The translations under genes were made by a program, and so were the position numbers. This document shows positions 9,001 through 64,000 of a stretch of 64,000 bases of DNA, piece after piece. How positions within the stretch are numbered: the first letter of the stretch is position 1; every line of letters starts with the position of its first letter. The notes beneath the pieces were generated by a model, which saw nothing but the letters and a program-made list of their open reading frames with translations, was not told the DNA's origin and searched no databases. The DNA lies in assembly GCA_965240325.2 (NCBI GenBank), contig OZ251238.1:62001-126000 (forward strand), written 5' to 3'. The DNA comes from Rebecca billardiae RCC1528. Taxonomy: Eukaryota; Protista; Haptophyta.

Positions 9001-9060
9001 CCATCGCCGCCACCGGCAGCCTCGCCGCTGCCACCGCCGTCCCCGCCGCCGTCGCCGCCG
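1..9060 (+). repeat. Coding tandem array A: PAASPLPPPS(PPPS)n subunits punctuated by a block containing PPRAQPF
   Basis: A marker CTAG (in CCCCCTAGCCC) recurs at about 557, 1814, 2507, 3908, 5249, 6290, 7631 and 8528 (spacings 1257, 693, 1401, 1341, 1041, 1341, 897, all multiples of 3). Antisense shadow ORFs 3908..5233 and 6290..7615 translate identically. Confidence 0.9.
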
Positions 9061-18000: not shown

Positions 18001-21000
18001 CCACGCGGCCTGCCGTTCCCGCCGCCCAGCCCGCCCGCGCCTCCGCCCAGCCCGCCTCCGGGCGCGCCGCCCAGCCCGCCGCCCCTGCCGCCGCCGTCGC
18101 CTCCGCCCGTGCCGCCGCCGTCGCCTCCGCCGAGCCCGCCGCCTCCTACGCCGCGGCCGTCGCCGCCACCATCGCCGCCGCCCTCGCCACCGCCCTCGCC
18201 GCCGCCGAGCCCGCCACCGCCGCTGCCCGCGCCGCCGCCCTCACCACCGCCCTCACCGCCGCCCTCACCGCCGCCCTCGCCGCCGCCTGCGCCGGCACCC
18301 TCGCCGCCACCCACTCCGCCGCCTTCTCCGCCGCCGGCTCCGCCGCCGAGCCCGCCGCCGTCGCCGCCCCCGGCGACGCCGTCGCCACCGCCGTCGCCGC
18401 CACCCGCGCCGCCGCCGTCGCCGCCGCCCAGCCCACCGCCCTCGCCGCCTCCGAGCCCACCGTTGCCACCGCCATCGCCGCCGCCAAGCCCGCCGCCGCC
18501 GCTGCCGCCGCCCACGCCGCCGCCCTCGCCGCCGCCAAGCCCGCCGCCGAGCCCGCCGCCGGCGCCACCACCGCCACCACGCGGCCTGCCGTTCCCGCCG
18601 CCCAGCCCGCCCGCGCCTCCGCCCAGCCCGCCCCCGGGCGCGCCGCCCAGCCCGCCGCCCCTGCCGCCACCATCGCCTCTGCCCGTGCCGCCGCCCTCGC
18701 CGCCGCCCTCGCCTCCGCCCTCGCCACCGCCTGGCCTGCCGCCGGTGCCGCCGCCGAGCCCACCGCCGGCGCCGCTGCCGGCGCCGCCTCCCAGCCCGCC
18801 GCCGAGCCCGCCGCCCTCACCGCCGCCGAGCCCACCGCCCTCCCCACCGCCCACGCCGCCGCCTCCGCCGCGGGCGCAGCCATTCGCGCCGCCCAGCCCG
18901 CCTGCGCCGCCCCCTAGCCCGCCGCCAACGCAGCCGCCGTCGCCGCCGCCGAGCTCACCGCCGCCGGCACGACCGCCTGCACCGCCGCCTTCGCCGCCGC
19001 CCCGCTCGCCTCCGAGCCCCCCGCCTGCCCCGCCGCCAGCGCCGCCACCGTCCCCTTCGCCTGGCCCGCCGCCGAGGCCGCCGCCCGCAGCGCCGCCCTC
19101 GCCGCCGCCGACGGCATCGCCGTCCCCGCCGCCCTGGCCGCCGCCGGGGCCGCCGCCGAGCCCGCCGCCCGCCGCGCCACCGCCCTCGCCAACGCCCTCG
19201 CCACCGCCGGTGCCTCCGCCGCCGCCGCGCGCCGAGCCGTTCCCGCCGCCGAGCCCGCCTGCGCCGCTGCCCAGCCCACCGCCATCGCCACCGCCGGCAC
19301 CTCCGCCGAGCCCGCCGCCGCCCGCGCCGCCGCCTTTGCCGCCGCCGGGCCCGCCGCCGCTTCCGCCGCCGAGCCCGCCACCCTCACCGCCGCCGAGCCC
19401 GCTGCCGTCGCCCCCGCCCTCGCCGCCGCCAGCGCCCCCGCCGGCGCCGCCGCCGAGCCCGCCTCCATCGCCACCGCCATCGCCGCCACCGGCAGCCTCG
19501 CCCCTGCCACCACCGTCCCCGCCGCCATCGCCACCGCCGAGCCCGCCGCCGGGCGCGCCGCCGGGCCCGCCACCGCCGCCGCGCCCGCCGCCCTCGCCGC
19601 CGCCGCGCCCGCCGCCCTCGCCGCCGCCGCGCGCGCCGCCCGCGCCACCGCCGCCGCCCGCGCCGCCGCCCGCGCGGCCGCCGCGCCCGCCGCCCTCGCC
19701 GCCGCCGCTCGCGCGGCCGCCGCCGCGCGCGCCGCCGAGCGCGCCGCCCTCGCCACCGCCCTCGCCGCCGCCGAGCCCGCCGCCGAGCCCGCTGCCCAGC
19801 CCGCCGCCCTCGCCGCCGCCGAGCCCGCCGCCGCGCGCGCCGCCCGCGCCGCCGCCGTCGCCGCCGCCGCCGCTGCCGCCGCCGTCGCCGCCGCCGCCGC
19901 CGCGCACCGAGCCGTTCCCGCCGCCCTCGCCGCCCTCGCCGCCGCCCTCGCGCCCGCCCTCGCCGCCGCCCTCGCCGCCGCCGCCCTCGCCGCCGCCCTC
20001 CCCGCCGCCCGTCCGCTCCGCGCGCGGCCGCGCGTACGACGGCTACCTCTCGGCCTGCGCCGTGTACGCCGACCTGGACGGCGACGGCGCGCACGACGCC
20101 GCGGCCGAGCCGTGGGCGCTCACCGACGCGGAGGGCGCGTACGAGCTGCTGCCGCTGGCGGGGAGCGGCGTGGGCGTGGCGGAGTGGAACGCGCTGCTCG
20201 CGAGCGCGCACGTGCGGCTGCTCCCCGCCGCCGACGCCGTCGCCGCCGGCCTCGTGAGCGCGCAGGCGGGCGCGCCGTGCATCGACGCCGCCTCGTCGCT
20301 GCCGCTCGCCGCGCCGCTGGCCGGCGCCGCCGCCGGCTCCGTGCTCTCGCCGCTCACGACGATGCGGCTCGAGCTCGCGGCGCGGCTGGGCGGGAACGTG
20401 AGCGCGGCGGACGGCGTGCTCGAGTCCGCGCTCGGCCTCTCCGGCGAGCTCTCCCGCGTGGGCTCGTCCCTGGGCGAGTTCGACCCGTACGGCACGCTGG
20501 CGGCGGGGGAGGGCGGAGCCGGGGGCGGCACAGCGTGGGGCGTGCGCGCGCGCGTGTCCAGGCTGGTGATCGCGCGCGTGGTGCAGCTCGCGAGCCTGGT
20601 GGAGCACGTCGCCACGTTCGTCGACGGCGTGCGCGCCTCGGACGCCGCCCTCATCGCCCCCGCCGAGTCGGGCGCCGCCTCGAGCGTCTCGCAGATCGGG
20701 CGTCGCTCGTACGGCCGACTGGCCGAGCTGCTGCTGCTGCCGCCCACAGAGGAGGGCGGCGAGGGCGGCGGGGCGGGGAACGGGACGGAGCCGAGCGAAG
20801 CGGAGGGCGGCGCCACGCGCCTCTCCGCGCAGAGCACGCCGCGCGCGCTGATCACCACCTTCCTCTCCGCCAGCCCGCCCGCGGGCAGCGCGGCGCGCGC
20901 GGCGCTGGCTGCCTCGCGCGCGCAGGCGGCTGCCGCGCTGATCGCCGGCGTGGGCGGCACTCTCGAGGCGCTCGCCGTGGCGGAGGCGGCGTTCGGCGGG

Positions 21001-45394: not shown

Positions 45395-45445
45395 TCAGTC
45401 GCCCGAAGAGTCATCGTGCGCAGAGTCGTCGGCCGAGCAGTTGCT

Positions 45446-45479
<34 letters not shown>

Positions 45480-48400
45480 GAGGATGCTTGGAGGTCGAGC
45501 AGCAGCGAGTGCGGACGGGCCGCCTCGCCCTCAGAGCCGCGCTGCGGTGCGCCCTCCGCCGCGCAGCTGCGGCGCGCGGCCGCGATGCACACGGGCGCCG
45601 CGTGCCACCACTCCGCACCCTCCTCCGCCTCCGCACCCTCCGCCTCCGCACCCTCCGCCTCCGCACCCTCCTCCGCCTCCGCACCCTCTGCCTCCGCACC
45701 CTCCGCCTCCGCACCCTCCGCCTCTCCCTCCGGCTGCGGCCGCGGCGCGCGCGGCGCGCGCGCGCGCGCGGCGGGCAGCAGCACGCTGCCCAGCGGCGGC
45801 GCGTCCGGCTCGTCCGCCGCGCACAGCAGCGGCACCGCCAGACTCGCGCAGCCGGCGGACGCGTGCGCGCCGCGCGCGCCGCCGCCGCCGCGCGACAGCC
45901 ACGCGAGCACCGCGCCGTGCAGCGGCTGCGCGCACCCGCCGCGCCGCGCGCGTGGCGCGCAGAGCGCGAGCGGCGGCGCCGCGCAGCCCGGCGCGGCGGG
46001 TGCGCACGGCGCGAGCCGTGCGCCGAGCAGCACCGCGCCGCGCACGCCGAACGCGCAGCGCGCGGCGGCCGCCCGCTCGGCCTCCGCGCCCGCGTGCTGC
46101 TGCGCGCCCGCGAGCTCCCCCGCGTCCGTGCGCAGCAGCGCGAGGCTCAGCTCGTCCGGCCGCACGCCGAGCGCGGCCGCGGCGCGCGCGCGGCTCGCGC
46201 CGAGCAGCGCGTGCGGGCACAGCAGCCGGCCGAGGGCCACGCCGCACACGGCGCCGCCGGACGCGCCTGCGGCGGCGTCGGCGGCGCGCGTGGCCGCGGC
46301 GAGCGCGGCGCCGACGGCGGGCTCGGTGGCCGGCGGCGCCGGCGGCGGCGTCGCGAGCGCGCCGTGCGCGCCGCCCGGCTCGATCAGCGCGCAGCCCGCG
46401 TGCGCGCGGCCGCACAGCTCGGCCACCCACGCGCCCAGCGGCGCGGCGCCGCCCCACTCGCACGGCGCGCGCCACGCGGGCGGGGCGGCGTCGGCGCGGA
46501 CGGCGCGCAGCGCGGCCAGGCCGGCCGCGCACAGCGGCGCGCCGGCCGCCGCCGCGTCCGCCGCGTCCGCCGCCTCGCGCAGCCCGGCGGCGGCGGCGCC
46601 GAGCGCGGCGTCGCGCGCGGCCGCCTCGCGCGCGAGCCAGCGCGCGCTCGGCGCGTCCGCCGCGCGCCCGGCCGCGAGCAGCAGCGGCGCGAGGTCCGGC
46701 TCGGACTCCGCGCCGGGCGCGTGCGCGCCGCCGGCGCCGTCGGGCGCGCGCAGCGCGGCGCGCGCCGCGCGCGAGCGCGCCGCCGCCGCCTCGAGCGCCG
46801 CGCACAGCGCGCGCGCGCGCGAGGCCGCCTCGGCCGCGCCCGGCGCGCCGCCGCCGTCCGCCTCGGCGCCGCCGCCCGCACCCGCCTCGCTCGCCTCCGC
46901 CGCCGCCTCCGCCGCCGCCGCCTCCTCCGCCGCGCCGACCGGCAGCGCGGGCCGCAGGTCGGCGAGGCCGTGCAGCAGCTGCCGCACGCGCTGCCGCGCG
47001 GCCGCGCGCGCGGCCGAGGCTGGCAGCAGCGCCGCGGCGGCGGCGTCGGCATCGTCCGCGCCCGCGGCCGCCTCGGCGGCGGCGCGCGCCCACGCGGCCG
47101 CGTGCCGCAGCGCCGCGGCGCCCGCGCCGCCGCCCGCGCCGGGCCCGGCGGCGGGCTCGGCGGCGGCGCGCGGCGGCAGCACGCCCGCACCCACGAGCGC
47201 CGCATCCGCCGCGGGCCCGACGCACTCGCGCACCAGCCGGCGCAGCGCCGCGCCGTGCTGCTGCGCGCCCGCGCCGTGGGCTGCGCCGCCCCCGCCGTAC
47301 ACGCCGCCGCCCGCCAGCTCGGCGCGCAGCGCGGCCCACGCGCACGCGCCGCCCTCCTCCGCGCCGCCGCCGCCGCCGCCGTCGCCGTGTGCGCGCAGGT
47401 GCGCGCGCGCGGCGCCGAGCGCGGCGCGCAGCTCGGCCGCGCCCCAGCCCTCCACGCCGCCCGCAGCCGCGCCGCGTGTGCGCAGCAGCAGCTGCGCGCG
47501 GCAGCCGCCCGCGGCGTGCAGCCTGCGCGCGCGCCGAGAAGCAAGCAACGGCGCACGCGGCCGGCGCGGCGGGTGTGAGGGCGGGCGGGGGCGGGTGCCG
47601 CCACCGCGGCCGCGCGCGCGGCGGTCGACGCGCGCACGCACACACACGCACACGCGCACACGCACACACGCACACACGCGCACGCACGCACGAACACGCG
47701 CACACGCACACGCGCACACACGCGCACACACACGCACACACACACACACGCACACGCGCACCTGCAGATCTGCACGGCGAGGCGCGCCGCCTGCTCCGAC
47801 GGCGCTGCGCCCAGCCACGCGCCCGCCTCCGCCAGCGCCGCGCGCAGGGCTGCGCCGAGCCCGAGGCTGTGCGGAGGGCACAGGCTGAGCCGCACGCAGC
47901 TGCGCAGCAGGCAGGGCGGCAGCGGGGCCGGGCCGTGCGGCTGCAGTGCGCACAGCAGCAGCAGACGGCTGCCTGGCGCCCACGGGCCTGCGGCGCACGG
48001 CGCACAGCGCACAGCGCACACGGGCGGCGCGGGGGCAGGGCGGGTGGGCGCGCGGACGCGCGCGGTGCGGTGCGGTGTGCGCTGTGCGGTGTGTGGTGTG
48101 CGGTGTGCTGTGTGCTGTGTGTGGTGTGCGGTGTGCGGTGTGTGCTGTGTGCTGTGTGCTGTGTGCTGTGTGGTGCGCGGCTGGGCCCCACCTGCGTCCA
48201 GCTCCGCTGTGAGCGCGCGCAGCCAGGTGGGGGGCGCGCTGTGCGCGTCGAGCAGCAGCGCCCAGCGGTTGGCGCCCTCGCGCGCGCCCCGCACCGCCGC
48301 GCTCGCCGCCTCGAGCGCGCCCGCGCCGCCGCCGAGCCCCAGTACGCTCAGGCTCACGCCGTGCGAACCCGCGGCCGCCGCGACCGCCGCGCACACGTCG

Positions 48401-51269
48401 GCCGCGCCGCCTTCGCCGCCGTCCTCGCCCTGCGCGGGCAGCAGGAGCGCGAGCGGCGCGCCGGCGGGGGCGGCGCGGAGCGCGGCGGCAAGGAGCTCCG
48501 GCGCCGTGCGCGCGCCCAGCGCCGCCGCGAGCGCGCCCGCCGCGCTGCCCTCCTCGCGCGCGCCGCCCGCGCGGCGCGCGTCCGCGCGGCCGCCGAGCGC
48601 TGCGAGCGCGAGCGCGCGCGCGCACTGCAGCGCGTGCGCCGTGGGGTTGAGCGCGCAGCCGAGCAGCAGCGTCGCCCACGCGCTGCCCGCCTCCTCCACG
48701 CACGCGCCGCTCAGGCCGTGCGCCGCCGCCGCCGCCGCGCCGCCGACGCGCACGCGCGGCGGCGGCGCCGCGCCGCCGAGCGCGGCCGCCCAGCGCGCGG
48801 GCGCGGCGCGCGCGCTCTCGCGCAGCGCGCCGCACAGCTCGGGGCGCGCCGCGCCCAGCAGCGCGCGCAGCCGCAGCTCGGCGCGGCGCGCGGCGGCGCG
48901 GCGCGGCGCGCCGAGCGCCGCGCGCACCTCCGGCGGCAGCGCCGGCAGCGCCACCGCCGCCGCCGCCGCGCCCTCGGCGCCGCCTCCGCGCGCGCCCAGC
49001 AGCCACCGCCACTCGGCGGCGGAGGGCGCGGCGCGCGTGCCGCGCAGCGCGCCCAGCGCGACGCCCAGCGCGGCGGTGAGCCGGTGGCGCGGGAGGCAGC
49101 CGAGCGCGGCGTCGCGCGCGGCGGCGCGCAGCGTCGCGCGCGCGAGCGCGCCCGCGCGCTCGGCGCGCGCCGCCGCGCCGCCGTCCGCGTCGGCCGCGCC
49201 GCCGCCGTCCGCGCCGCCGCCGGCCGCGCCGCCGCCGCCGCCGCCGCCGCCGGCCGCCGGCCGCGCGCGCTCGGCGGCCGGCGGCGGCAGCGCGGCGGCG
49301 GCGGCGCGCAGCGTGGCCTCGAGCGCGGGCAGCGCGTGCGCGTACGCGGGGTGCAGCGCGCACAGCGCCGACGCGCCGCCGTGCGCCGCCGCCGCCGCCG
49401 CGGCCACCGCCGCGTACGGCGCGGCCGCCGCGTCGCACGCGTCCGCGCGCGCCTGCGCCGCGCGCGCCTTTGCGGCGACCGCGCGCGCGTCCGCCTGCAG
49501 CCGGCCGAGCGCGGCGAGCAGCGCGGCGTCGTCGAGGAGCGAGGCGCGCGCCGCGCCGGCGGCGGGCTCCGCCTCCGCCCCGCCCGCCGCGTACGCCCCG
49601 TCCCACCCGCCCCACCCGCCGCCGCCCCACCCGCCGCCGCCGTCGGGCGCGAGCGCGTCCGCCGCCGCCAGCCGCTGCAGCATGGCCGCCCGCGCGGTGC
49701 GCACCGAGCCGAGCGCGCACCCCAGCTCGGCGCGCGCAGACGCGCGCGCGGCCGCGAGGCGCGGCGCGTCGGCGCGCAGCGCGAGCGCGAGCAGGTGCGC
49801 CTCGAGCGCGCCGTCGGACAGCGCGCAGTCCACCACCGCCACGCGCGCGCACAGCTCGGCGCACAGCGCGCCCACGCCGCCGCGCGCCGCCGAGCACAGC
49901 AGCAGCCGCGCGCCGGCGGAGGGCGCCAGCCGCGCGCCGCCCGGCCACAGCCGGCCGCGCGGGCGGCACGCGGCGGCGGCGGCGCGCGCGGCGGCGGCGA
50001 GGGCCGCGTCCGCCTCCGCCACGTCGAGCCCGCCGCCGCCCTCGCCCTCCGCGCCGCCGCCCTCCTCCTCCTCCGCGCCGCCCCAGCCCGCGCGCGCGCC
50101 CCCGCCGCCGCCGCCGCGCGGCTCGGGGTGCGCCTCGTCCGCGCCGTGTGCGAGCAGCGGCAGCAGCGCCGCCTCGAGCAGCGGCAGCGCGCAGCGGGGC
50201 AGGCCGTGGGCGCACTCGAGGAGCACCACGCCGCCGTAGCGCAGCGCGGCGGAGACCGCGGCGGCCCACGCGCGCGGCGGCGCCGCGGCGTTGGCGCGCG
50301 TCAGCCGCGCCGCGCCGCCGCCCGCGCCGCCCGCGCCGCCCGCGCCGCCCGCGCCGCCCGCGCCGCCGCGGCCGCGCAGCGCGCCGCCGCCGTCGGCGAG
50401 CGCGGCGGCGAGCCACGCGACGACGGCGCCGCTCGGGTCGAGCAGCAGCGGCGGCCGCTCGGAGCGCGTGGCCACCAGCGCGCACACCGCCGCGCCGCCC
50501 GCGGGCGGCGGCGGCGGCTCGGCGCCCGGCGCGCGCGCGCGCGCGTGCGCGTGCGCACCCGCCGCCTCCGCCTCCGCCGCCGCCGCCGCCTCCTCCGCAC
50601 ACGGCAGCCCGGCCGCCGCCCAGCCGCGCAGCTCGGCGGCGGGCACGCAGCGGCGCACGAGCTCGGCGGGCGTGGGCGGCGGCGGCGGCGGCCCCGCCGC
50701 CGCCGCGCCGCCGCCCGCGCCCTCCTCCGCCCCCTCCGGCGGCCCCTGCGCGCCGCCGAGGGCCGCCCCGCGCAGGCTGTGCGGCACGCCCGCCGCCTCC
50801 AGCGCCGCCTCCGCGCCGCGCACGAGCTCGGCGCGCGCGCGCGCCCGCAGCGGGCCGGCGTGCGCGAGGAGGACGGCGCACGCGAGCGCGTCGCCCGCGA
50901 GCGCGCGCTGCGCGCCCGCGCACGCGCCCGCCGCCGCGATCCACCGCGCGCCGTGCTCGCGCAGCCCGCCGAGCAGCGCGCGCGCGCGCGCCACGCGCGC
51001 GCGCGCGACCTCGGCCGCCGCTCGCTCGCGGTGCGCCGCCGCCACGCGCGCCGCGTAAGCGTCGCGCGCGGCGCGGATGGCGGCGGCGTGGCGCGCGGCG
51101 TCGGCGTGCGCGCGCGCGAGGCCGGCCGACGCGGCCGCCGCCTCCGCCTCGAGCACCGCCGCGCGCGCGCCGCCGCCGCCGCCGCCGCCGATGGCGCCGC
51201 CGACCGAGGCCGCGCGCGCGCGCGCGCCCAACCCCAGCGGGTGCGGCGGCTGCGGCGCACACGCCGGCT

Positions 51270-51303
<34 letters not shown>

Positions 51304-51889
51304 GGCCGCGCCGCCGCCGCCGCCGCCGGGCGCGCGCGCGCGCTCGAGCTCGGAGCGCGCGGTGCGCAGCTGCGCGGAGAGCCGCTCGGCCTCGGCGCGC
51401 GCGCGCTCCGCCCCCGCCTGCGCGCGCGCCAGCTCGTCCAGCTGCGCCGCCGCCGCCGCCTCGCCGCCGCCGAGCGCGCGCTCGCGCGCTCGCAGCGCGC
51501 GGCCGAGCGCGCGCGCGTCTCGGCACGCGCGCGCGAGCGCGTGGCAGCCGCCGACGAGGCGCGCGCGCGCGGCGGCGTGCTCGCGCGCGGCGGCGGCGTA
51601 CGTCGCGTCGAACGCGACGAGCAGCTCGAGCAGCGCGCGCGGCGACGCCGCGCACGCGCTCGCCGGCCCGGCGCGCGCGCACGCGAGCAGGTGCGCGCGC
51701 GCGGCCGCGCCCGCGAGCGCGTCCGCGCGCAGCGCCTCGGCCTCGCGCGCCTCCTCCGCCTCGGCGCCGTCGAAGAGGGAGCGCGCGACCTCGCGCGCCT
51801 CCTCGGAGAGCGCGCCGTCCACGCCGGCGTGCCGCGCCGCGCCGCCGCCGCCCTCGTCGCCCGACGACTCGGACGAGGACCAACCGCCA

Positions 51890-51923
<34 letters not shown>

Positions 51924-54132
51924 ACGCCGCGGCGGCGGCGGCGGCGCCGCCCTTGCGAGCGGCGGCGGCGGCGGCGGCGGTGCGCAGCGGCGCGGCGGCG
52001 AGCGCGGCGGGCGCGGCCTCGCGCGGCGGCGTGGGCTGCTGCGGCTGCGCCTCCGCCGCCATCGCCGCCTCCGCCGCCGCCGCCTCCGCCGCCGCCTCCG
52101 CCGCGCGCTCCCCGAGCGCATCCGCCGCCCTGTCGTCAGCCAGCACGCGCCGCAGCGTGCGGCCGAGCGCGCGCTGGCACAGATGCACCGCCGCCTCGGC
52201 GCGCCAGGGCGGCAGGTGCACGAGCGCGGCGCAGCGGCCGAGCGCGGGCGAGAGCAGCGAGAGCGCCGCGCCCACGCCGCCGCCGCCGCCCTCCTCCTCG
52301 CCCCCCGCCGTGCACAGCGTCAGCACCACGCTCACGTGCGCGCACACTGCGCGCCGCAGCAGCAGCGCGGCGCCGGCCGCGCCGGCGCCGGCCGCGCCCT
52401 CCGAGCCGCCCGCACCCGCGCCGCCGGCCGCGGCGCCGTCGGCGTCCGCGGCGGCGTCGGCGGCGGCGTCGGCGGCGGCCGTGGCTGCTGCTGCCGCCGC
52501 GGCGGCGGCGGCGGCGGCGGCGGCGGTCTGCGCGGCGGACGACGACGCGCGCCGCCCGCCCCCGTCGTGCGCCGCGGCGGCGCGCGCGCCGTGTGCCGCG
52601 GCGCGCGCGGCCCTGGCGTGCGCGGCGCGCTGCCGTGCAGCTGCTGCGTCTCGCCGTCGGCGAGCAGCGGGCCGAGCGCCTCGAGGGCGTGGGGCGGCAG
52701 GGCGTGCGCGCCGGTGAGCAGCAGCGCGGTGCGCTGCCGCCGCGCCGCCGCGTCGCACGCCACCTCCGCCACCGCGCACAGCCACGCGCCCACCGCGCCC
52801 GCCTCTGCGTCGGTGCGGCCGGGCGCGCGCAGCCGCAGCACGCGGCAGCCCGCGTCCGCGGCGGCGAGCCGCGCGAGCGACGCCTTGCCCGAGCACGGCG
52901 GGCCGCAGAGGGCGAGGTGAGAGCCGCCGCCCGGCGCCGTCGGCGTCTGCGCGCACAGCAGCCGGCGCAGCCGCAGCAGCGCGAGCGTCGCGCCGTCATG
53001 CAGCAGCAGCGGGCAGCGCGCGCTCCGCGCGTCGTCGTCCGCGCCGTCCGCCACGCCGCCGCCCGGCGCCGCGCCGCCGCCAAACCCGCCGGCGCTCGCG
53101 CCGGCGCCGCCGGGCGTGGGCGGCAGCGGCGTGGCGGGCAGCTCGGCGAGGCCGGCGCCCAGCTCCGCCCCGCCCTCCGCCGCGCCCTCCGCCTCCGCCG
53201 CCAGCGCCTCCGCCGCCGCGTCAAAGTGCGCGCGCGCCTCGGCCAGCTCCAGCCGTGCGTACGCGCCCCGGGGCACGCCCTCCGCGCCGCCCTGCTCGCC
53301 CGGTGGCAGCAGCGCCTCCTCGAGGGTGGAGCGCGCGGAGAGGGCGGAGACGGTGGAGGCGGAGGAGGCGCGGCCGAGGGAGGGCGGCGGCGGGTGGAGC
53401 AGCGCGAGCGACGCCGCGCGCCGCCGCAGCGGCGAGCCCTCGCGCGCCGCGTGCGAGCGCGCCAGCAGCGGCTGGTGGGAGAGCGCGGGCGGCACGCGCG
53501 CAGAGCAGCCCCCGCCGCTGCCGCCGCCGCACCCGCCGCGCTCGGGCGAGTGCGGCGGCGCGACGGCGAGGTGCGGCGGCGGCGCGGCGGCGGGCGCGGC
53601 GGCGGGTGCGCCGAGTGCCAGCGGCGGCGGCAGCCGCAGGCTGGGCGGCGGCAGCGCGCGCTGCCCTGGGCTGCCGTGCGGCGCGCAGCCGAGCGGGCTC
53701 GCCGCCGCCGAGCCGCCGCCGCCGCCCGAGCCGCGGCTGCGGCGGCGCGGCGGCGACGCGCCGCGCGCGGCGCTGAGCGCGCGGCTGAAGAGCGGCGGCT
53801 CGGCGGCGGCGCCGAGCCAGCCGCGCTCGCACGCGGGCACCGCCGCGCACAGCGCCGCGCAGATCGCCTCCGCCGCGGCCGCTCCCAGCCCCTCGTCGGG
53901 GCCGAGCGGGTCTGCGAGTGTGCGCGCGCCTTCGTGCGCACACAGGCGGCACAGCGCGCCCACCGCGCCGCCGCCCGCCGCGGCGGCCGCGGCGGCGGCG
54001 GCCGCGGCGGTGCCGCCGGGCGTGGGCGGCGGCTGCGCGTGCGCGTGCAGCGCGTGCGCGTCGATCGCGACGCGCAGCGCACACGCCCAGCGCGCGAGGT
54101 CGCGCGGCGCGCACAGCGCCCAGCCCGCGGCC

Positions 54133-54184
<52 letters not shown>

Positions 54185-55455
54185 CGCCGTCGGCGAGCGC
54201 GCGCACCGCGCCGTGCGCCGCCGCCATCGCGCAGCCCAGCGCGTCCGCGAGCTCGGCGCACGCGGGCGGCGCGCGCGCGAGCGCGGCGCGCAGCAGCGCG
54301 CCGCCGAGCGCGCCGAGCGCCGCCTCGGACGGCGCGCCCACGTGCAGCTGCGCAAACGCGGCGGCCAGGCGCGGCGGCAGCGGGCGGCGGCCGGGCTCGG
54401 CGCGCGGCCGCGCGCACGCGAGCACGCGCAGCCGCCGCGCGCGCGCCCACGCCCAGCCCGCGCCGTGCGCGGCCGGGGCCGCGCCGCCGCCGCCCGCCGC
54501 CGCCGCCGCCGCCGCGGCCGCGCGCCAGTGCGCGCTCGCCAGCTCGGCCGGCGGCAGCCACAGGCCGCGCGCGCACAGCAGCTGGCGCAGCGCGGCGTGT
54601 GCGCCGGAGGGCGCGTGCGGCTGCGGCTGCTGCGGCGGCTGCTGCGGCTGCGGCTGCGCGGGCAGGTTGAGGTCGTCGACCAGCAGCACCACCCAGCACG
54701 CACCACCCGCGCCCGCGCCCGCCTCCGCGCCACCCGCACCCCCGGACCCGCCGCCGCCGCGCGCGCGCCGCGCGCCGCGCGCGCGCGCGCCCGGCGGCGG
54801 GCGCGGCAGCAGCTGCGCGGCGCCGTCGCGCGGCGCGCGCGCCGCCGCGCACGCGCGCAGCAGCGCGCACCCCACCGCGCCCGCGCCCGTGCCCGCGCCC
54901 AGCCGCAGCACGCTGCGCGCCGCGCGCGGGCACGCGCGCGCCGCCGCGTGCGCGGCCGCCACCCGCTTCGCTGCGCCGCGCGGCCCGACGAGCAGCGCGG
55001 GGCAGCGCGCGAGGAGCAGCGCGCCGCACAGCCGGCGCACGGCCTCGGTGGCAGCGGTGGGCACGCACAGCGTGCCCGCGCACGCGGCGCGCAGCGCGCC
55101 CGCCTCCGCGTCGCGCAGCGCGCGCGGCGGCGGCGGCGGCGGCGGCGCGCCCGCGCACGGCGCGCCCGGCAGCCACGCCCACGCGCCGCAGCCCGGCTCC
55201 AGCCACGCGCACTCGAGCGGCAGCCCGGGCGGCGGCGCTGCCTCGCGCGGCACGAGCGCGCACAGCTCCGCGCCCAGCCGCGCGCGCGCGCGTGCTGGCA
55301 GCTGGCCGCCCATGCCCCACAGCGCGCACAGCAGCACCCAGCGCGCGCAGAAGGCGGACGCGAGCGCGTGCGCGCGCTCGTGCGCGGCCGCGGCCGCCGC
55401 CGCCTCCGCCTCCGCCTCGTCGTCCGAGCCGCCGCCGTCGCCGCCGCCGAGGGCG

Positions 55456-55488
<33 letters not shown>

Positions 55489-58400
55489 GCGTCGGCGCCG
55501 GCCGGCGGCGCGCGGCCGCGCGCGCCCGCCGCGCCCGCCGCGCCGCGCTGCGACTTGCGCGCGGCTGGGCGCTCGCCTCGCGCACGCTGCGCCCCTCGCG
55601 CGTGCTGCGCGATCAGCGCGCGCAGCCCGGACGAGAGCAGCGCGAGGAAGGTGCGCAGCAGCGCGGGCGGCGCGCACTCTGCGGCGAGCTCGCGCGCGCC
55701 GCCGCCCGCCGCGTGCTCCGCCGCCGCGTCGAGCGCCAGCGCGAGCGCGCGCAGGGCCACGGACGAGGCGTGCATCTGCGCGGGCACCTCAAAGGAGCCG
55801 CCGCCCCCAAGCGCGGCCTCGGCGGCGGAGAGCGCGGCGCGGTCCCCGACCAGCAGCGGCGCGAGCGCGCGCGCGCACGCGGCCTGCAGCGCGCACGGCG
55901 CCCCCGCCGCGCGCGGCCCGCCGCCGCCGCCGCCGCCGCCGCCGTCGAGGTCGGAGGAGCGGCGGCGCGCGCTGCCGCGGCGCGCGCTGCCCTCGCGCGA
56001 GCCGCCGCCAAACCCGCCGACGCCGCCGCCCGCGGCCGCCGCGCCCGCGGCCGCGGCGGCAAAGGCCACGCCGCCGCCACCGCCGCGGCCGCGGCCGCGC
56101 CCCTGCCCGTACGCGCGGCGTGTGCGCACGCCCACCTCGCCCACGTCCGCGCCGACCGCGCACCGAGCGCCGCCCGGCCGCGCGCACACGCCGCCGCCTT
56201 GGCCGCCCTCCGCCTCCGCGTCCGACTGGTCCGACGTGTCGTCCTCGTCCTCCGCCTCCGCCTCGGAGGACGCGGTGGACGGCGCGGAGGAGGAGGAGGC
56301 GGAGGAGGCGGAGGCGGAGCCCCCCGCCAGGTGCCCCGCGTCGGCGGGCCGCGCGCCGCCGCCCGCCGCGCCGGCCGCCGCCGCGCTCGCGCCGCCGGCC
56401 GCGCCGCCGCCGAGCGGCGGCGCGGCCGGCGGCGCGCGCGGCAGCGTCGCGCGCGCGGCGGCGCGCGGCGCGGGCGCGAGCGCGCGCGCCGCGAGCAGCC
56501 GGCAGTAGCGCAGCAGCCGCGCGGCGGGCGGCACCGCTTCCTCCCCCACGTGGCACAGCCCGCACGCCAACAGCGCCGCGGGCGCCGCGTGCGCCGCGCT
56601 GTCGGTCTCGAGGAGCAGCGCCACGGCGCGCGGCACGCGCACGCTGCCGCCGCGCGGGTCGCACAGCAGCTGCCCGCCCCACGGCCACGCGCCCGGCCCC
56701 AGTCCCTCGAGCGAGCGCGCGTCGAGCGAGCCGTCGACGCAGAGCCACCACGGCTGCGGGCGCGCGCGCGCGCCGCCGCGCCGCGCGCGCCGCGCCACCG
56801 CGCCGCCGCGCGCGCCCGCCGCCGCGCTCGGCGTCGGCCGCTCGGCGGCGGCTGCGGTGCGGCGGCGCGTGCGCGCGCCCACAGCCGTGCGCGGCGCGCG
56901 CGCGCCGCCGTGCGCATCCGGCGGCTGCAGGCCGAGCGGGCTGCCGCCGCGCGCGCCGTCGGCGGCGGCGGCGCGCGTGCCGAGCGCGCGGAAGCTAGCG
57001 GCGCCCGCCGCGCCCCCCTCCGCGCCCGCGCCCTCGTCCTCGCCGCCGTCCGCGTCGCTGCCGCTGCCGCCGCCGCTGCCGCCACCGCTGCCGCTGCCGC
57101 CGCCGCTGCCGCCGCCGCTGCCGCTGCCGCCGCCGCTGCCGCCGCCGCTGCCGCTGCCGCTGCCGCTGCCGCCGCCGCTGCCGCTGCCGCTGCCGCCGCC
57201 GCGCGCCGCCTCGTCCGCCTCGCTGGCCGAGTCGGAGCGCTCGGAGCTCGGCGCGTCGGAGCGCTCGGAGCTCGGCGCGTCGGCGGCCGCGGCCGCGCGC
57301 CGCCGCTGCTGCTGCTGCTGCTGCTGCTGCTTTGCCGCTGCGCGCAGCAGCGCGGGCAGCAGGCCCTCATCCCACTCGCCGCTGCCGTCGGCGCGCGCGC
57401 AGCCGAGCCACGCGCCGCCGCCGCCGTCGAGCGCGTGCGCGTCCACTGTCGCGCACGCGCCGCGCGCGCGCCGCCGCGCGCACAGCGCGCCGAGCAGCGT
57501 GCGCCACAGCGCGCTCTTGCCCGAGCGCGGCGGCCCCAGCAGCAGCACGCAGCGGCGCGCGCGCAGCAGCTCGTGCAGCGCCACGCCACAGCCCACCCAC
57601 TCGCGCAGCGGCAGCGGCGCGCACGCGCGGCCCGCGCACGCGCCCTCGAGCGCGCGCGCCACGCGGCCGCACCGCCCGCGCAGCGGCGGCGCGCCGGGTG
57701 CGGGCGCGGGTGCGGGCGGTGCGTGCGGCGGTGCTGGGTGCCGTGGCAGCGGCCGCGGCAGCGGCCGTGGCAGCAGCGCGTCGAGCAGGGCGGCGCACTC
57801 GGCAGCCGCGCACGGCCCTCGGTGCTCGGCCGGCGGCGCGCACCGCTCGAGCGCCTCGCGCAGCGCGGCGCACTCTTCGGCCATCGAATCAGCCGCGCCC
57901 TCGGCGCCGCCGCCCTCGGCGCCGCCGCCCTCGGCGCCGCCGCCCTCCTCGCTGCCCGAGTCGGCGGCGCTGCCGCTGCCGCCGCTGCCGTCGTCCGAGC
58001 AGCCGCCGCCGCCGCCGCCGCCGCCGCCGCTGCTGCTGCTGCTGCTGCTGCTCAGCCCGAGCGAGCGCCCGCCCCGCGCCTCCGCCTCGGCGCCGCGCGC
58101 CGCGCGCCGCCGCCGCGCGCGCGCCGCGCCGAGCGCCGCGCCCGCCTCCCGCGCGAGCGCGGCCAGCAGCGCGCCGCCCAGCGCGCACGCGCCGCCGCCC
58201 GCGGGCGCGCACCCGCCGTGCAGCTCGGCGGCGTGCGCGAGCGCGCAGCACAGCCGGCGGCCGAGCGCCGCGCCGTGCGCGAAGCCGGCCGCGCCCAGCG
58301 CCGCGGCGGCGAGCGCGGCCGCGTCCGGCGCGCGCACGTGCACGGGCCGCAGGTACGCGGCCAGCGAGGGTGGCAGCAGCGCGCGAGCGCACGCGCCGCG

Positions 58401-58507
58401 CCCGCCGCCGGCCGCGGGCAGCGCTGCGGCGGTGGGTGCGGCGCCGTGCGTGTGCGGCAGGAGCGTGAGCACGAGGGCGGCGTGGCGCAGCGGCGCGCCC
58501 TCCGCGC

Positions 58508-58546
<39 letters not shown>

Positions 58547-61227
58547 GCGGCGCGGCGCGCTGCGCGTCGGCGAGCGCGCGCGCGGCGGCGCCGAGCGCGC
58601 CGAGCGCGGCCGGGCCCAGCGCGTGCGCGCCGCACAGCACAGCCCAGCAGCCGCGCGCGCGCGCGCCCGCGACGGCGCGCTCGACGGCGGCCGCGGCGGT
58701 CGCGCCGCCGCAGTGCAGCACGCTCGCCGGCCGGCCGAGCGCCGCGGCGAGCTCGAGCACCGCGGTGCGCTTGCCGCAGCCCGCCGCGCCGCGCAGCGCG
58801 GGGTGCGCGCGCGCGCGCAGCGCGCTCGCGAGCGCGAGCTGCGCGCGGCCGCACTCGGCGCTCGGCAGCGCGCGGCCCGCGCCGAGCGGCGTGGGCTCCC
58901 AGCGGTGCGGCCCCTCCCACGCGCCGAGCGCGCACGTCACGCCGCCGCCCGGCGCGAGCTCGCACCGCAGCGTCGCCGCCCACTCGAAGCAGCGCGGCCC
59001 GCTCGCCGCGCACGCGCGCGCCAGCACCGCGGCCGCGTCGCGCAGCGCCACGAGCTCGGCGCCGGCCGCGCGCACGGCGGCGCGCGCGGCGCGGTCGGTG
59101 GTGGTGGGCGCGTGCGGCGCGGGCGCGGTGCTGTCGCGCGCGTGCGGGGCGAGCGGCGCGGCGGGCCCGGCGCCGAGCGCGCCGAGCGCCGCGCCCACGC
59201 GCGCGCCCACCGCGCCTACCGCTCCGCGCGCCTCCGGCCCACCGCCCGCGCTGCGCGCGCCCAGCGCCGCGCCCAGCTGCGCGGTGGCGGCGGCGCGCAG
59301 CGCCAGCGCCCAGAGCTGCGCGGGCGGAGGGGGGCGGCGCGCGCAGCCGGGCGCGGCGCGCGCGGCGGCGTGGAGCGCGGCCGCGCCGCGGCCCTCGGGC
59401 GCGCCGAGCAGCGCGGCGGCCGCGCCCACCGCGGCCGGCGCCGCCTCGCGCAGCCCCGCGCGCAGCGCCGCGTCGAGCGCGCCCAGCCACGCCCACGGCG
59501 GCTGCGCGGCGCGCGCGCGCACGGGCGTGGCGAGGGGCAGCAGCTCGGCGTCGTGCGTGCGCGCGCAGAGCACGAGCCAGCGCGCGCCCTCGGCGTCGGC
59601 ACCGCCGGCGGCCTCGTCGGCGGCCTCGCCCGCGCCCGCCGCCTCCGCGCCGCGGCCGCGCGCGGCGGCCGCGTGCGCCGCGGCCGCGTCGGGCTGCGCG
59701 GCGACGCCGAGCGCCGCGACCCCGCCCCACAGCGAGCTGAGCGCCCACGGCCCGAGCTCGGCGGGGGGGCGGGTCGAGGCGCTCGCGCCCAGCTCGAGGA
59801 GCTGCGCGTCGTCCAGCGCGTGCAGCCGCGCCCACTGCCCGCGGCACGCCGCCGCGTGCGCGCCCAGCGCCGCGCGCGCGCCGTCGAGCGCGCGCGCCGC
59901 TCGCTCGAGCCGCTCGCGCGCGGCCGGCAGCGCGAGCGCGCCGCCGCACGTGGGCGCGCGCGCGAGCGCGGCGCAGAGCGAGCGCAGCTCGGCGTCCGCG
60001 GCGGCGAAGGGCGCGCGCGCGGCGGGCGGCACCGCCGCGCCGCCCGCCGCGCCGCCGCCGCCGCGCCGCCGCGCGACCCCCGCCGCGCCGCCGCCGCCGC
60101 CGCCGCCGCCGCCTTGGCCGCCGCCTTCTCCGAGCATGGGCGCGAGCGCGGCCGCGTGGCTCTGCGCGTGCCGCCACGCCTCGAGGAGGGCGCGCAGGCG
60201 TTCGAGGGCGGCGAGGAGCGCGGCGCGCTCGCGCGCGTGCGGGCGCACGCCCGGCGCGCCGCCGAGCGCGTGCGCCGCCGCGAGCGCCTCGCCCGTCACG
60301 CCGAGCGCCGCGCCGAGGCCGCAGACGCGCGGCGGGCCGCCGCACCCGCCGCCGCCGGCGCGCCGGCGCGCGCGCCAGCCGCCGCCGCCGCCCGCGGCGT
60401 CGCCGCCCTCGGCGGCGTCGGCGTCGTCGTCGGCGTCGTCGTCGTCGGCGTACGCGACGCGCAGCGGGCACGCCTCCGCGCCCTCGCGCAGCGCGCGCAG
60501 CTCCGCCTCCGCGCCCGCCTCCGCGCGCGCGCGCGCCACGAGGGCGCGCACGGCGCCCTCGGCGGCGCCGAGCGCGGCCGCGCCGCCGCCGCGCAGCAGC
60601 CGGCCGAGCGGCGTGGCGGCGGGCGGCGGGCCGCGCGGCGGGCCGGGGAGGGCGAGCGGCGCGAGCGGCCCCGCGCGCAGCGCGGCCCAGTGCCGCGGGC
60701 GCAGCGCGTCCGCGCGCAGCTCGCCGAGCGCGGCGAGCGCCGCCGCCGCGTGCGCGAGCTCCGCGCCCAGCGCGCGCGCCGCGCCCCCCTCGCGCGCGCG
60801 CGCCGGCAGCGCGCGCAGCGCCGCGCCCGCCTCGTCCGCCTCGGCGCGCGCCTTGCGCGGGACGAGGCCGCCCCACGGCTGCGCGCGCAGCGCCGCGAGC
60901 CGCTCCGCCGCGCCGCCGAGCTGCGCCCACGCCGCGCGCTGCGCCGCCGCGTCCGCCGCGAGCGCGCGCACGGACGCGGCCGCCGCGCGCAGCGCGGCCG
61001 CGCCGCCCTCGCCGCCGACGGCGCCGCCGCCGACGCCGCCGCCGTCGGCGTCGGCGTCGTCGGCGAAGGGCGCGGGCGCGGCGAGCTCGGCCGCCGCCTC
61101 CTGCGCCGCCGCGAGCGCCGCGCCGAGCGCGTCCGCCGCGCCCTCGAGCGTGCCGAGCGCGCCGAGCGCCGCGGCGGGCGTGCGCGCGCGCGGCGGCGCG
61201 GCGCGCGCGGCGCCGCCGGCCGACGGC

Positions 61228-61268
<41 letters not shown>

Positions 61269-62521
61269 GCCGCCGTCGGCGGCGGGCTCGGCGTGCGGCG
61301 GGTGCGGCGCGTACGCGTCCGGCCGCGCGGCGGGCCACCACTCCGCGCAGAACACCGCGCACAGCTCGCACAGCGCCGCCGCGCGCGCGCCGTGCGCCGC
61401 GCGCAGCCGCTGCCAGCCCGCGGCCAGCGCGCGCGCCTCCGCCTCCGCGCCGCCAAGCAGGGCGCGCGCGGCGGCGCGCGCGGCCGCGGCGGCGTCGTCC
61501 GCGGCGGCGGCGGCGGCGGGCGGCTCGGCGGGCGGCGGGTGGTGCGGCTGCGCCGCGCGCGCGTGCGCCAGCGCCGCCGCCGCCGCGGGCAGGCTCTCCT
61601 CCAGCCAGCGCCGCGCGCGGGCGCGCGCGGCGCGCGCGGCGCGCAGCGCGCGCAGCAGCGCCGCCCACGGCGCGCCCAGCGCGGCCGCAGCGCCGCCCGC
61701 GCCGCCGTCGGCGGCGGCGGCGGAGGCGGCGGCGGCGGCGGGCGCGGCGCGGCCCGCCGCGGCGGCGGCGAGCTCGGGCGGCAGCGCCGGCGGCGGCGCG
61801 CACAGCGCGGCCAGCGCCGCCGCCGCGCCGCCGCCGCCGAGCGCCTCGGCCTCGCGCGCGGCCGCGTCGGCGACGGCGCGCGCGCGCGCGGCCGCGAGCG
61901 CGCGCGCGCCGCCGCCGAGCGCGGCGGCCCACGCGGCGGCGCGCGCGGCGGCGGCGGCGTCCGCGCCCGCCGTGTCGAGCGCGAGCACGCCGAGCCGCTG
62001 CGCGCCCGCCGCCGCCGCCGCCGCGCGCGCGCCGCCGCCGCCGGTTCGGCCGTCGAGCGCGCGGCGCGTGCCGCCGAGTGCGCGCAGCGCGGCCGCGCGC
62101 GCCGCGAGCGCGGCATCGGCCGCCGCGTCGTCCGCGCCCGCCGCCTCGGCGTGGGCGAGGGCGGCGGCGGCGGCGGCGGCGGCGGGCGGCGCGCGCCACA
62201 GCGGCGCGCGCGCCGCCGCCCACGCCGCCGCCGCGCCCTCCGCGCGCCGCACCGCCGCGTCGGCCGCGCCGAGCGCCGCGGCGAGCGCGCCCGCCGCGTC
62301 CGCGCACGCGGCCGCGAGCGCGCCGCCGTGCTCGGCGGCGGCGCCGCGCGCGCCGAGCGCGGCGGCGGCGGCGCGCGGGCCGCGGAGCACCCACCAGTGC
62401 CGCGCCGGCCGCGCGCCGCCGTCCGCGCGCTCGCACTCGCACGCCGCCGCGCACGCCGCGCGCACCGCCGCCCAGAGCTGCGCGCGCACACACGGCGCGC
62501 TCGGCCACAGCGCCGCGCACA

Positions 62522-62555
<34 letters not shown>

Positions 62556-63807
62556 CTCGGAGACGCGGAGGCGGACGCGCGCGCGCGGCGCGGCGTGGGC
62601 CTGCGGCGGCAGCGCGGCCGGGCTGCCCCGCCCGCTCCCGCCGCCGCCGGCAGCAGCGCCGCCACCACCGCCGCCGCCCGGCGCCGCCGCCCACGCGCGC
62701 AGCGCGCGCGCCGCGCGCCTCGCGAGCGCCGCGGCTAAGCGCGCGTCCGCAGCCGCGGCGTAGGCGGCGGCGCCCGCCACGTTGGCGGCGGCGACGCGCT
62801 CGACGGCGGCGCGCGCGGCGGCGGCGGCGGCGCGCGCGGTGGCGGCGGCGCACGCCCCGCCCCGCCCCTCGCCGCCCTCCTCCTCCGCCGCCGCCGCCGC
62901 CTCCTCCTCCCCGCCGCCGCCGCCGCCGCCCTCCGCGTCCGCGCGCGCGTCCGCTCCGTCGATGGCCGCCAGCGCGCGCGCCAGCGCCGCCTCTGCGCCG
63001 AGCAGCTCGCGAGAGGCGGCGGCGTACGCGACGAGCGCGCGGCGGAGGCGCGCGGCGCACGCGCGCAGCGCCGCCGCGTCCGTCGGGCCCGCGCCCGCCG
63101 CCGCGCGCACCGCCGCGTGCGCCGCCGCCGCGTGCGGGCGCAGGTGGCGGCGCAGCGGCGGCGGCACGCGCGCGACGGCGGCCGCGCGCGCGTCGAGCGC
63201 GCCGCCGAGCTCGGCGGCGGCGGCGGCGAGCGGCGCCCACTCGGCGGCGGCGGCGGCGAGGGCGCGCGGCACGCCGCCCTCCGGCGCGCCCGCCCCCGCC
63301 GGCGCGTACCCCAGCCGCCCCAGCGCCTCCGCCTCGGCGGGCAGCGCCAGCAGCAGCGGCGGCAGCGCGGGGCACAGCCGCAGCCGCGCGCGGCCGCCGC
63401 CGCCGCGCGCGCGCGCCGCCGAGCCGCCACCGCCACCGTCCGCGCGCGCCCCCGCCGCCGCCTCGGCGGCGGCGCCGTCGGCAGTGCCGCCGGCCGCCGC
63501 GCCGGCGCTGCGCGCCGGCGGCGCGAGCTCGAGCACGGCGAGCGCCCGGCCGCGCGGCGGCGCCGCCAGCTCGCGCGCGGCCGCGGCCGCCCACGCGCCC
63601 ACGAGCGCCGCCGCGCGCGCGGCCGCGGCGGCGCGCAGCGCGGCCGCGTCGGCGAGCACGGCGCGCGCGGCGGCGTGCGCGCCGCACGACTCGCCGAGCG
63701 CGGCGCGCACGAGGCGCGCGCCCAGCTCGCCGCGCGCGCCGAGCGCGCGCGCGCGGCACACCGCCGCCGCCACCGGCGGCCAGCCGCGCGCGCCGCCCAC
63801 CGCGGCC

Positions 63808-63845
<38 letters not shown>

Positions 63846-64000
63846 CTCGGCGGCGGCGCCGCGGCCGAGCGCGGCGCGCGCGCGCCCGACCTCGGCGGCG
63901 GCGGCGCGGAGGAGCGCGCCCTCCGCGTCGGGCAGCGCGGCGCGCACGGCCGGGCGGCCGAGCGCGCCCGCCGCGCGCGCCAGCGCGCGCGCGCGCGCGC
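45395..64000 (-). CDS. Highly divergent dynein heavy chain-like protein, 5'-truncated (about 6,050 aa in window), with an apparent frameshift near 52630 and two introns
   Basis: Dynein landmarks occur in order: linker FEWAATLR; AAA1 GAAGCGKRT and LPPSLAAYLRPVHVRAPD; AAA2 GPPRSGKS, GEWDEGLL and WLCVDGSLD; AAA3 GPRGAAKR and LVDDLNLP; AAA4 HLALCGPPCSGKASLARLAA; stalk LLGGLREHGARW; AAA5 RPPLLLDPSG; AAA6 WALLLDAH; and GGVYGG. Introns 48191-47988 and 47761-47523; TGA at 45395. Confidence 0.85.
45446..45730 (-). repeat. Coding acidic repeats at the dynein-like C-terminus: (GAC)n poly-Asp and a 15/18-bp EAE(E)GA repeat
   Basis: About 11 GTC triplets at 45446-45478 and CTCCGCACCCTCCGC-like units at about 45610-45730. 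Confidence 0.8.
47630..48175. repeat. (CA)n and (TG)n-type microsatellites in the two introns of the dynein-like gene
   Basis: CA-rich run at 47630-47760 and GTGCTGT/GTGCG repeats at 48060-48175. Confidence 0.85.
57055..57330 (-). repeat. Coding Gly-Ser repeat and poly-Gln inserted within AAA2 of the dynein-like protein
   Basis: About 48 aa of GGGSGSGS repeats, a duplicated SSERSD and Q9, lying between GEWDEGLL and WLCVDG. Confidence 0.85.

Follow-up and report, generated by a model that had tools for sequence, protein, structure and literature searches.

The dynein stalk is usually seen just as a wire linking the microtubule-binding head to the ATPase ring. This study concerns a dynein heavy chain (DHC) gene of the haptophyte Rebecca billardiae RCC1528 that lies within a stretch of 64,000 nucleotides (nt) of contig OZ251238.1 (GenBank assembly GCA_965240325.2, positions 62,001 to 126,000 of the forward strand), which we call the window and whose own numbering is used throughout. 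An earlier model-generated reading of the window, made from its letters and a list of its open reading frames (the sequence-only reading), had proposed that this gene encodes an intact stalk from which the globular microtubule-binding domain (MTBD) has been lost.

Among the described dyneins, DNAHX and DNHD1 are oversized non-motile animal DHCs with many disordered insertions and a non-catalytic AAA1, for which structural or assembly roles have been proposed (PMC11785096). In the sea-urchin DNAHX, AAA1 is not conserved and is proposed to be locked in an ATP-binding state, microtubule binding is impaired, and in phi particles the stalk pairs it with another heavy chain (PMC11785096). DNAHX is derived from the outer-arm alpha chain and occurs in specific animal lineages, its MTBD being disrupted by insertions and its stalk kinked (PMC11785096), and DNHD1 is drawn with an MTBD. 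Compared by these published descriptions, the R. billardiae gene resembles both in its non-catalytic AAA1 and its low-complexity insertions, and the logic of the mechanism we propose for it would match that proposed for DNAHX. However, DNAHX and DNHD1 keep the MTBD, and the DNAHX stalk is kinked, whereas here the MTBD is gone and the stalk is predicted to be straight.

The class-12 dyneins of choanoflagellates and metazoans have no typical microtubule-binding site, and their stalk is also without a coiled coil (Kollmar 2016, PMC5100056); the same study lists taxon-restricted dynein classes and 75 unclassified "orphans" (PMC5100056). As a precedent for a DHC lacking a normal MTBD, class 12 stands alone in the literature, and it shares with the present gene a stalk that has no typical microtubule-binding site. 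By description only, the coiled coil is absent there but retained here, and the one group belongs to Holozoa whereas our gene is from a haptophyte. Our incomplete coverage of the literature yielded no paper on a DHC that has kept its stalk but not its MTBD. Non-motile dyneins and dyneins with aberrant stalks are thus already established in animals, and a stalk kept without its MTBD is a new form.

We also considered human DNAH12, which has been described as "lacking the MTBD" and acting through partners (PMC11949491), and rejected it as a precedent. A 151-residue MTBD query matches the 3,960-residue DNAH12 axoneme chains (PDB 8j07_g1, 9fqr_PW) end to end at residues 2614-2756 with E ~4e-12. 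The published claim of an MTBD-less DNAH12 conflicts with this match in both PDB chains.

A stalk without a microtubule-binding domain

The dynein gene lies on the minus strand, from before 63947 down to 45398, and contributes ~6,000 codons to the window, summed over its exons. The GC content of the window is 66-90%, and 85-90% in the part from 46 to 64 kb; stop codons are scarce, and every one of the six frames runs open over kilobases. Because this is so in DNA of ~88% GC, open reading frame length is uninformative, and the evidence types relied on were homology, codon periodicity and structure prediction, with each exon of the gene analyzed separately. The minus-strand frame from which the sequence-only reading quoted its two coils does exist, with codons phased from 52995. 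Its stalk comprises the following features:

51340-51648, minus strand: end of the AAA4 lid and stalk arm CC1, its helix continuing to a Pro codon at 51330-51328 (CC1 profile, AlphaFold2 helix, alignments)
51169-51330, minus strand: stalk tip, a Gly/Ala/Pro loop replacing the MTBD (composition, repeats, null MTBD profile, AlphaFold2, codon-position GC)
50779-51168, minus strand: stalk arm CC2, to a Trp codon at 50943-50941, and the stalk base entering AAA5 (CC2 profile, PF12777, phmmer)

For reference we used eleven stalk regions of canonical DHC fragments from an exhaustive protein search, aligned with the translation of 51801-50695. Eight of these fragments were scanned with Pfam and all eight contain the MT domain, which is essentially full-length in six. 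Profile hidden Markov models (HMMs) were built from 9-11 canonical DHC stalks, with the sequence of the present gene excluded. The profile of CC1 and the AAA4 lid matched 51648-51340 (33.9 bits, E 8e-10, HMM positions 3-105 of 119), ending 14 positions short of the profile end, and that of CC2 and the stalk base matched 51159-50779 (71.4 bits, E 1.5e-21, HMM positions 7-133 of 133). The Pfam MT model (PF12777), which the sequence-only reading had suggested running, matches the CC2 part alone (profile positions 227-336 of 344). The invariant stalk-base columns L, L, R-W, G, G and R are retained, and on these scores the identification of CC1 and CC2 as true dynein stalk arms, rather than mere Ala/Arg-rich helices, is statistically supported.

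The lengths are as informative as the scores. In nine reference DHCs with a whole stalk, 83 residues separate the base Gly (G-L motif) from the CC1 Pro, the MTBD occupies 124-152 residues, and 78 residues lead from the CC2 Pro to the base Trp. Here CC1 runs for 74 residues between the base Gly and the Pro codon at 51330-51328, and CC2 for 75 residues from codon 51168 to the Trp at 50943; the sequence-only reading had quoted ~78 amino acids ending in Pro and ~76 amino acids for the two coils. Between the stalk-base landmarks there are 203 residues as against 285-313 in the nine references, so that 82-110 residues are missing; this alignment to canonical DHC stalks, which had been proposed as a check, bears out the loss. 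CC1 is short by ~9-13 residues beside its conserved Pro and CC2 by ~3-6. The sequence-only reading, in describing a "clean" loss with the stalk kept, was therefore right about the loss and about the stalk but slightly generous in the word "clean". The near-canonical length of both arms suggests that stalk length still matters.

What stands in place of the head is a loop of ~54 residues, of which 19 are Ala, 18 Gly and 6 Pro (43/54, ~80%), with 11 others that include two Arg and one Glu; the low-complexity stretch at the tip spans 41-54 residues. The ~52 amino acids of Gly/Ala/Pro sequence that had been placed between the arms at 51170-51330 coincide exactly with this loop, at 53-54 residues. 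On the coding strand its DNA reads (GGC)n, (GCC)n, ~70 nt of unique sequence and (GGC)n. The GC content of third codon positions (GC3) in frame is 0.98-1.0 across the loop and 0.96-1.0 along the frame that passes through it, and because it stays high straight through, the loop appears to be read in frame with no obvious intron. We considered the loop as an intron and regard this as unlikely, given the in-frame periodicity; an intron would in any case shorten the tip even more.

An MTBD profile, run at maximum sensitivity against the 421 stop-to-stop pieces of the six-frame translation of the window, gave a best E of 4. The same profile scored E 1.4e-25 on its positive control, the database fragment P0003, whose partial MTBD was not used in building it. 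The null six-frame search rules out an MTBD hidden in another frame or a nearby exon. The AlphaFold2 run on the single sequence agreed with the run on an alignment: a helix at residues 54-156 of the modelled segment (predicted local distance difference test score, pLDDT, up to 96), disorder at 159-209, and a second helix at 209-314 (pLDDT 85-96). The loop has a pLDDT of 34-49 (34-44 with the alignment) and no globular tip, and the stalk is predicted as a straight, regular pair of uninterrupted helices. A prediction folding this segment as an MTBD had been named beforehand as evidence that would count against the proposed loss; in both runs the segment was disordered. Foldseek with the stalk model retrieved generic antiparallel coiled-coil hairpins alone, none at E <= 0.001. 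Taken together, these results confirm a retained stalk with no MTBD at its tip.

Dynein identity and the state of the ATPase ring

Outside the stalk, Pfam matches run in canonical dynein order (DHC_N2, AAA_6, AAA_5, AAA_7, AAA, AAA_9) across two long minus-strand frames:

60468-60932, minus strand: linker (DHC_N2), PF08393, 28.3 bits, below the cut-off of 31.9
58638-58847, minus strand: AAA1 core (AAA_6), PF12774, 46.2 bits, above the cut-off of 25.2
57474-57548, minus strand: AAA2 P-loop with intact GxxxxGKS (AAA_5), PF07728, 23.5 bits, above the cut-off
54948-55073, minus strand: AAA3 P-loop region (AAA_7), PF12775, 19.5 bits, sub-threshold
52800-52913, minus strand: AAA4 P-loop, PF00004, 20.4 bits, sub-threshold
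49660-49860, minus strand: AAA5 (AAA_9), PF12781, 24.9 bits, E 1.2e-5, below the cut-off of 27.4

The last ring module, known from motifs alone, is presumably the AAA6 that we read in the exon at 47762-47987. When searched with phmmer against solved structures, the linker, AAA1, AAA2 and the AAA3 lid fall as colinear pieces on human DYNC1H1, linker residues 1001-1090 aligning with DYNC1H1 1327-1416. CC2 with AAA5 aligns to axonemal heavy chains of Chlamydomonas, trypanosomatids and human. Identity to DHCs is about 20-30%, and 26-39% for the best database matches, which are generic DHC fragments. The C-terminal exon and the stretch ahead of the first intron have no Pfam or PDB match.

In AAA1 the Walker A Lys is retained (codon 58772-58770) and the Walker B motif reads Cys-Gly as against Asp-Glu in DYNC1H1, so that AAA1, judged by these motifs, is not catalytic. 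With the P-loop Lys kept and both Walker B acids lost, there would probably be ATP binding without hydrolysis at the main site. The P-loop of AAA3 is degenerate, with Ala replacing the Gly before the Lys, but keeps this Lys and, downstream, a DD-x-N Walker B; AAA4 keeps its P-loop Lys, followed by Ala, and has lost the Walker B acid. As the MTBD is absent, there would be no microtubule grip through the stalk, and the contention of the sequence-only reading that the protein cannot walk agrees both with this absence and, independently, with the altered AAA1 Walker B.

With canonical axonemal and cytoplasmic DHCs the gene thus has in common the order of its recognizable modules, near-canonical stalk arms (74 and 75 residues versus 83 and 78), the stalk-base residues and the Walker A lysines of AAA1-AAA4. 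Canonical DHCs have an MTBD and a catalytic AAA1, whereas this gene is without both, and at ~1.4 times the usual DHC length it is also larger, because of its low-complexity inserts.

Extent and coding phases of the gene

A codon-phase track, computed as GC3 minus the GC content of second codon positions (GC2), resolves three coding phases: A from 64000 to 52720, B from 52480 to 48280 together with a short exon at 47987-47762, and C from 47560 to 45520. The corresponding features are:

52631-63947, minus strand: coding phase A, with a tail of ~1,000 residues, linker, AAA1, AAA2, AAA3 and the first half of AAA4 (ordered Pfam matches, colinear phmmer matches to DYNC1H1, constant phase)
52540-52660, minus strand: change from phase A to phase B, offset 2, inside AAA4 (phase track)
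47988-48191, minus strand: GT-AG intron of 204 nt, 5' part CA-rich and 3' end TG-rich (sequence and loss of codon periodicity)
47762-47987, minus strand: short exon of 226 nt in phase B, with an AAA6-like motif (phase track and sequence)
47523-47761, minus strand: GT-AG intron of 239 nt, TG-rich (sequence)
45395-47522, minus strand: last exon in phase C, covering the C-terminal region and an acidic tail and closed by the stop codon at 45397-45395 (phase track)

The 5' end of the gene is placed beyond the window, because there is no ATG among the first 1,270 codons of phase A. The change from phase B to phase C is due to the two GT-AG introns, 48191-47988 and 47761-47523; the CA-rich and TG-rich stretch at 47523-48191 is thus a pair of introns around a 226-nt exon in dynein phase. 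For the change from A to B at 52660-52540 there are three candidates: a mini-intron, a genuine frameshift, or an indel of 1 nt that assembly introduced in a G5 run.

Constraint, decay and alternative explanations

We propose that this is a real, lineage-specific "orphan" DHC of at least ~6,000 residues, with the MTBD deleted and AAA1 dead, that is, a non-motile pseudo-motor, and we give this reading a probability of roughly 0.6. In favor of constraint, codon phase stays unbroken for stretches of 11.3, 4.2 and 2 kb in spite of the ~160 repeat arrays that Tandem Repeats Finder reports. The strongest sign is compositional: there are nine lysines in ~6,000 residues, and four of the nine are the Walker A lysines of AAA1-AAA4; at a Lys frequency of 0.0015 the chance of Lys at all four P-loops is ~5e-12. 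A fifth is the conserved linker Lys, within the segment that aligns with human DYNC1H1, and the D-D-x-N conserved in AAA3 holds one of just six Asn. The pattern shows nucleotide-binding residues being protected while GC pressure stripped nearly all other lysines. The four retained P-loop lysines and the long constant reading phase therefore favor a constrained gene over a wreck.

Several observations weigh against this reading. Most of the AAA modules score under their Pfam cut-offs (AAA1 and AAA2 are above, AAA3-AAA5 below, though in the right order and with recognizable P-loops), and Dynein_C is weak, an hhalign comparison with this region in three DHCs falling on the expected motifs at E 0.017 and a probability of 2.7%. 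The composition is extreme: Ala, Gly, Leu, Arg and Pro make up 75% (Ala 33%, Gly 16%, Leu 10%, Arg 10%), while Lys, Asn, Ile, Met, Tyr and Phe together account for ~1% of the ~6,000 residues (Lys, Asn, Ile and Met each ~0.1%), which fits relaxed constraint over much of the length. For the shift from A to B the only GT-AG candidates of length 3n+2 within the ambiguous stretch are 50-62 nt long. An AAA4-stalk-AAA5 query found no close orthologue among 1.84 billion representative proteins, returning 16 weak matches (best 48.8 bits); those examined among the 16 were all canonical DHC fragments. A word search with the linker-AAA2 region gave nothing at E <= 1e-5. Finally, the gene is known here from genome assembly sequence alone.

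As an observation on composition in its own right, the rare Lys, Asn, Ile, Met, Tyr and Phe residues of the gene (45398-63947) cluster at canonical functional sites, namely the four P-loop lysines and the D-D-x-N of AAA3.

The alternative that survives best, although we consider it unlikely, is a ghost gene or young pseudogene: a decaying duplicated dynein that would make no protein, and whose missing MTBD, dead AAA1 and invading triplet repeats would all be marks of lost function. Such decay might account for a phase change at 52660-52540 without an intron of ordinary length, but the phase changes number just two in 18.5 kb and one of them falls at GT-AG introns. It might equally account for the degenerate catalytic motifs in AAA1, AAA3 and AAA4, yet the P-loop lysines are retained at all four sites though Lys is otherwise almost gone, and so are the invariant stalk-base residues. 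Open frames carry no information at 88% GC and so offer no defense against it; the periods of the high-identity repeat arrays do, being multiples of three in the exons and 7, 8, 14 and 22 in the introns. The missing orthologue among the 1.84 billion representatives also speaks for a ghost gene, and DNHD1 has been discussed in like terms (PMC8754002).

Alternatively, the short unique segment of the loop might still let the tip bind something specific, be it microtubules or another partner, in which case we would be looking at a new type of stalk tip and not at a loss. The conserved stalk lengths suggest that tip position still matters, and one MAFFT alignment put a Pro-Pro of the loop under the conserved Pro-Pro column of the MTBD. 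This match vanishes in a larger alignment, however, and we take it as chance; moreover the loop is ~80% Ala, Gly and Pro with two Arg and one Glu, is predicted to be disordered and has no MTBD profile score, and we regard a binding tip as quite improbable.

Least probable, and very much so in our view, is an assembly artefact in which MTBD-coding DNA was collapsed or dropped between GGC/GCC runs, for although the loop is flanked by near-identical (GCC)n runs (51168-51190 and 51310-51328) with an inverted (CGG)n run inside, and such repeat DNA is hard to sequence and the assembly is the sole source for the loop, a collapse from one flanking run to the other would have taken out the ~70 nt of unique sequence, which has no MTBD similarity, the frame and GC3 periodicity are seamless across the loop, and the ends of CC1 and CC2 are also trimmed, which looks like an evolutionary deletion.

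A possible role for a headless stalk

Returning to the orphan pseudo-motor that we favor, its parts would follow the normal order: tail, linker, AAA1-AAA4, an antiparallel coiled-coil stalk, AAA5, AAA6 and a C-terminal region. The globular MTBD would have been deleted along with ~9-13 residues of CC1 and ~3-6 of CC2, and a disordered loop of 54 residues, encoded mainly by GGC/GCC triplet repeats, substituted for it. ATP would be bound but not turned over at AAA1, a state that may resemble the low-affinity, pre-powerstroke state of canonical dynein. Such a protein would most likely be a structural or regulatory subunit of dynein shape, held by its tail and with nucleotide bound; its stalk might act as a rigid spacer or touch a partner, for instance the stalk of another dynein. 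The sequence-only reading had likewise suggested a scaffold, strut or regulator, in the axoneme or another appendage. That it is in addition an expressed and selectively maintained component of the flagellum (or haptonema), and hence the first DHC with a nucleotide-locked, headless stalk strut of canonical length, is a tentative extension that we hold to be possible but doubtful.

If the gene were indeed expressed and maintained, the dynein stalk would have a function of its own apart from track binding, such as spacing, docking, or stalk-to-stalk pairing as in phi particles. A natural DHC without a head, but with both arms near-canonical, would represent a ready-made dissection of stalk function, and would show that non-motile dyneins, recently recognized in animals as DNAHX and DNHD1, also occur in a distant lineage of algae. 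More generally, the few AT-rich codons that survive in ultra-GC genomes, such as those for Lys and Asn at functional sites, can mark constraint where open reading frames are uninformative.

Other observations

One of the database matches, P0007, is an otherwise canonical DHC fragment of 3,309 residues that carries a Hint/homing-endonuclease (intein-type) domain (PF05203, E 4e-16, residues 88-491). This domain sits between the end of AAA1 and AAA2, and P0007 is without an intact GxxxxGK[ST] P-loop.

Elsewhere in the window, two other long minus-strand frames have no Pfam match. The first part of the window, from 30 to 20009, is occupied by a single tandem array of ~20 kb, with a 12-nt unit, GCCGCCGCCGTC, in ~1,660 copies at 68% matches. 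A higher-order period of 201 nt is present from 9043 on, and the GC skew is -0.4 throughout. The array could be a giant Gly/Asp-rich repeat protein, read on the minus strand, or a satellite.

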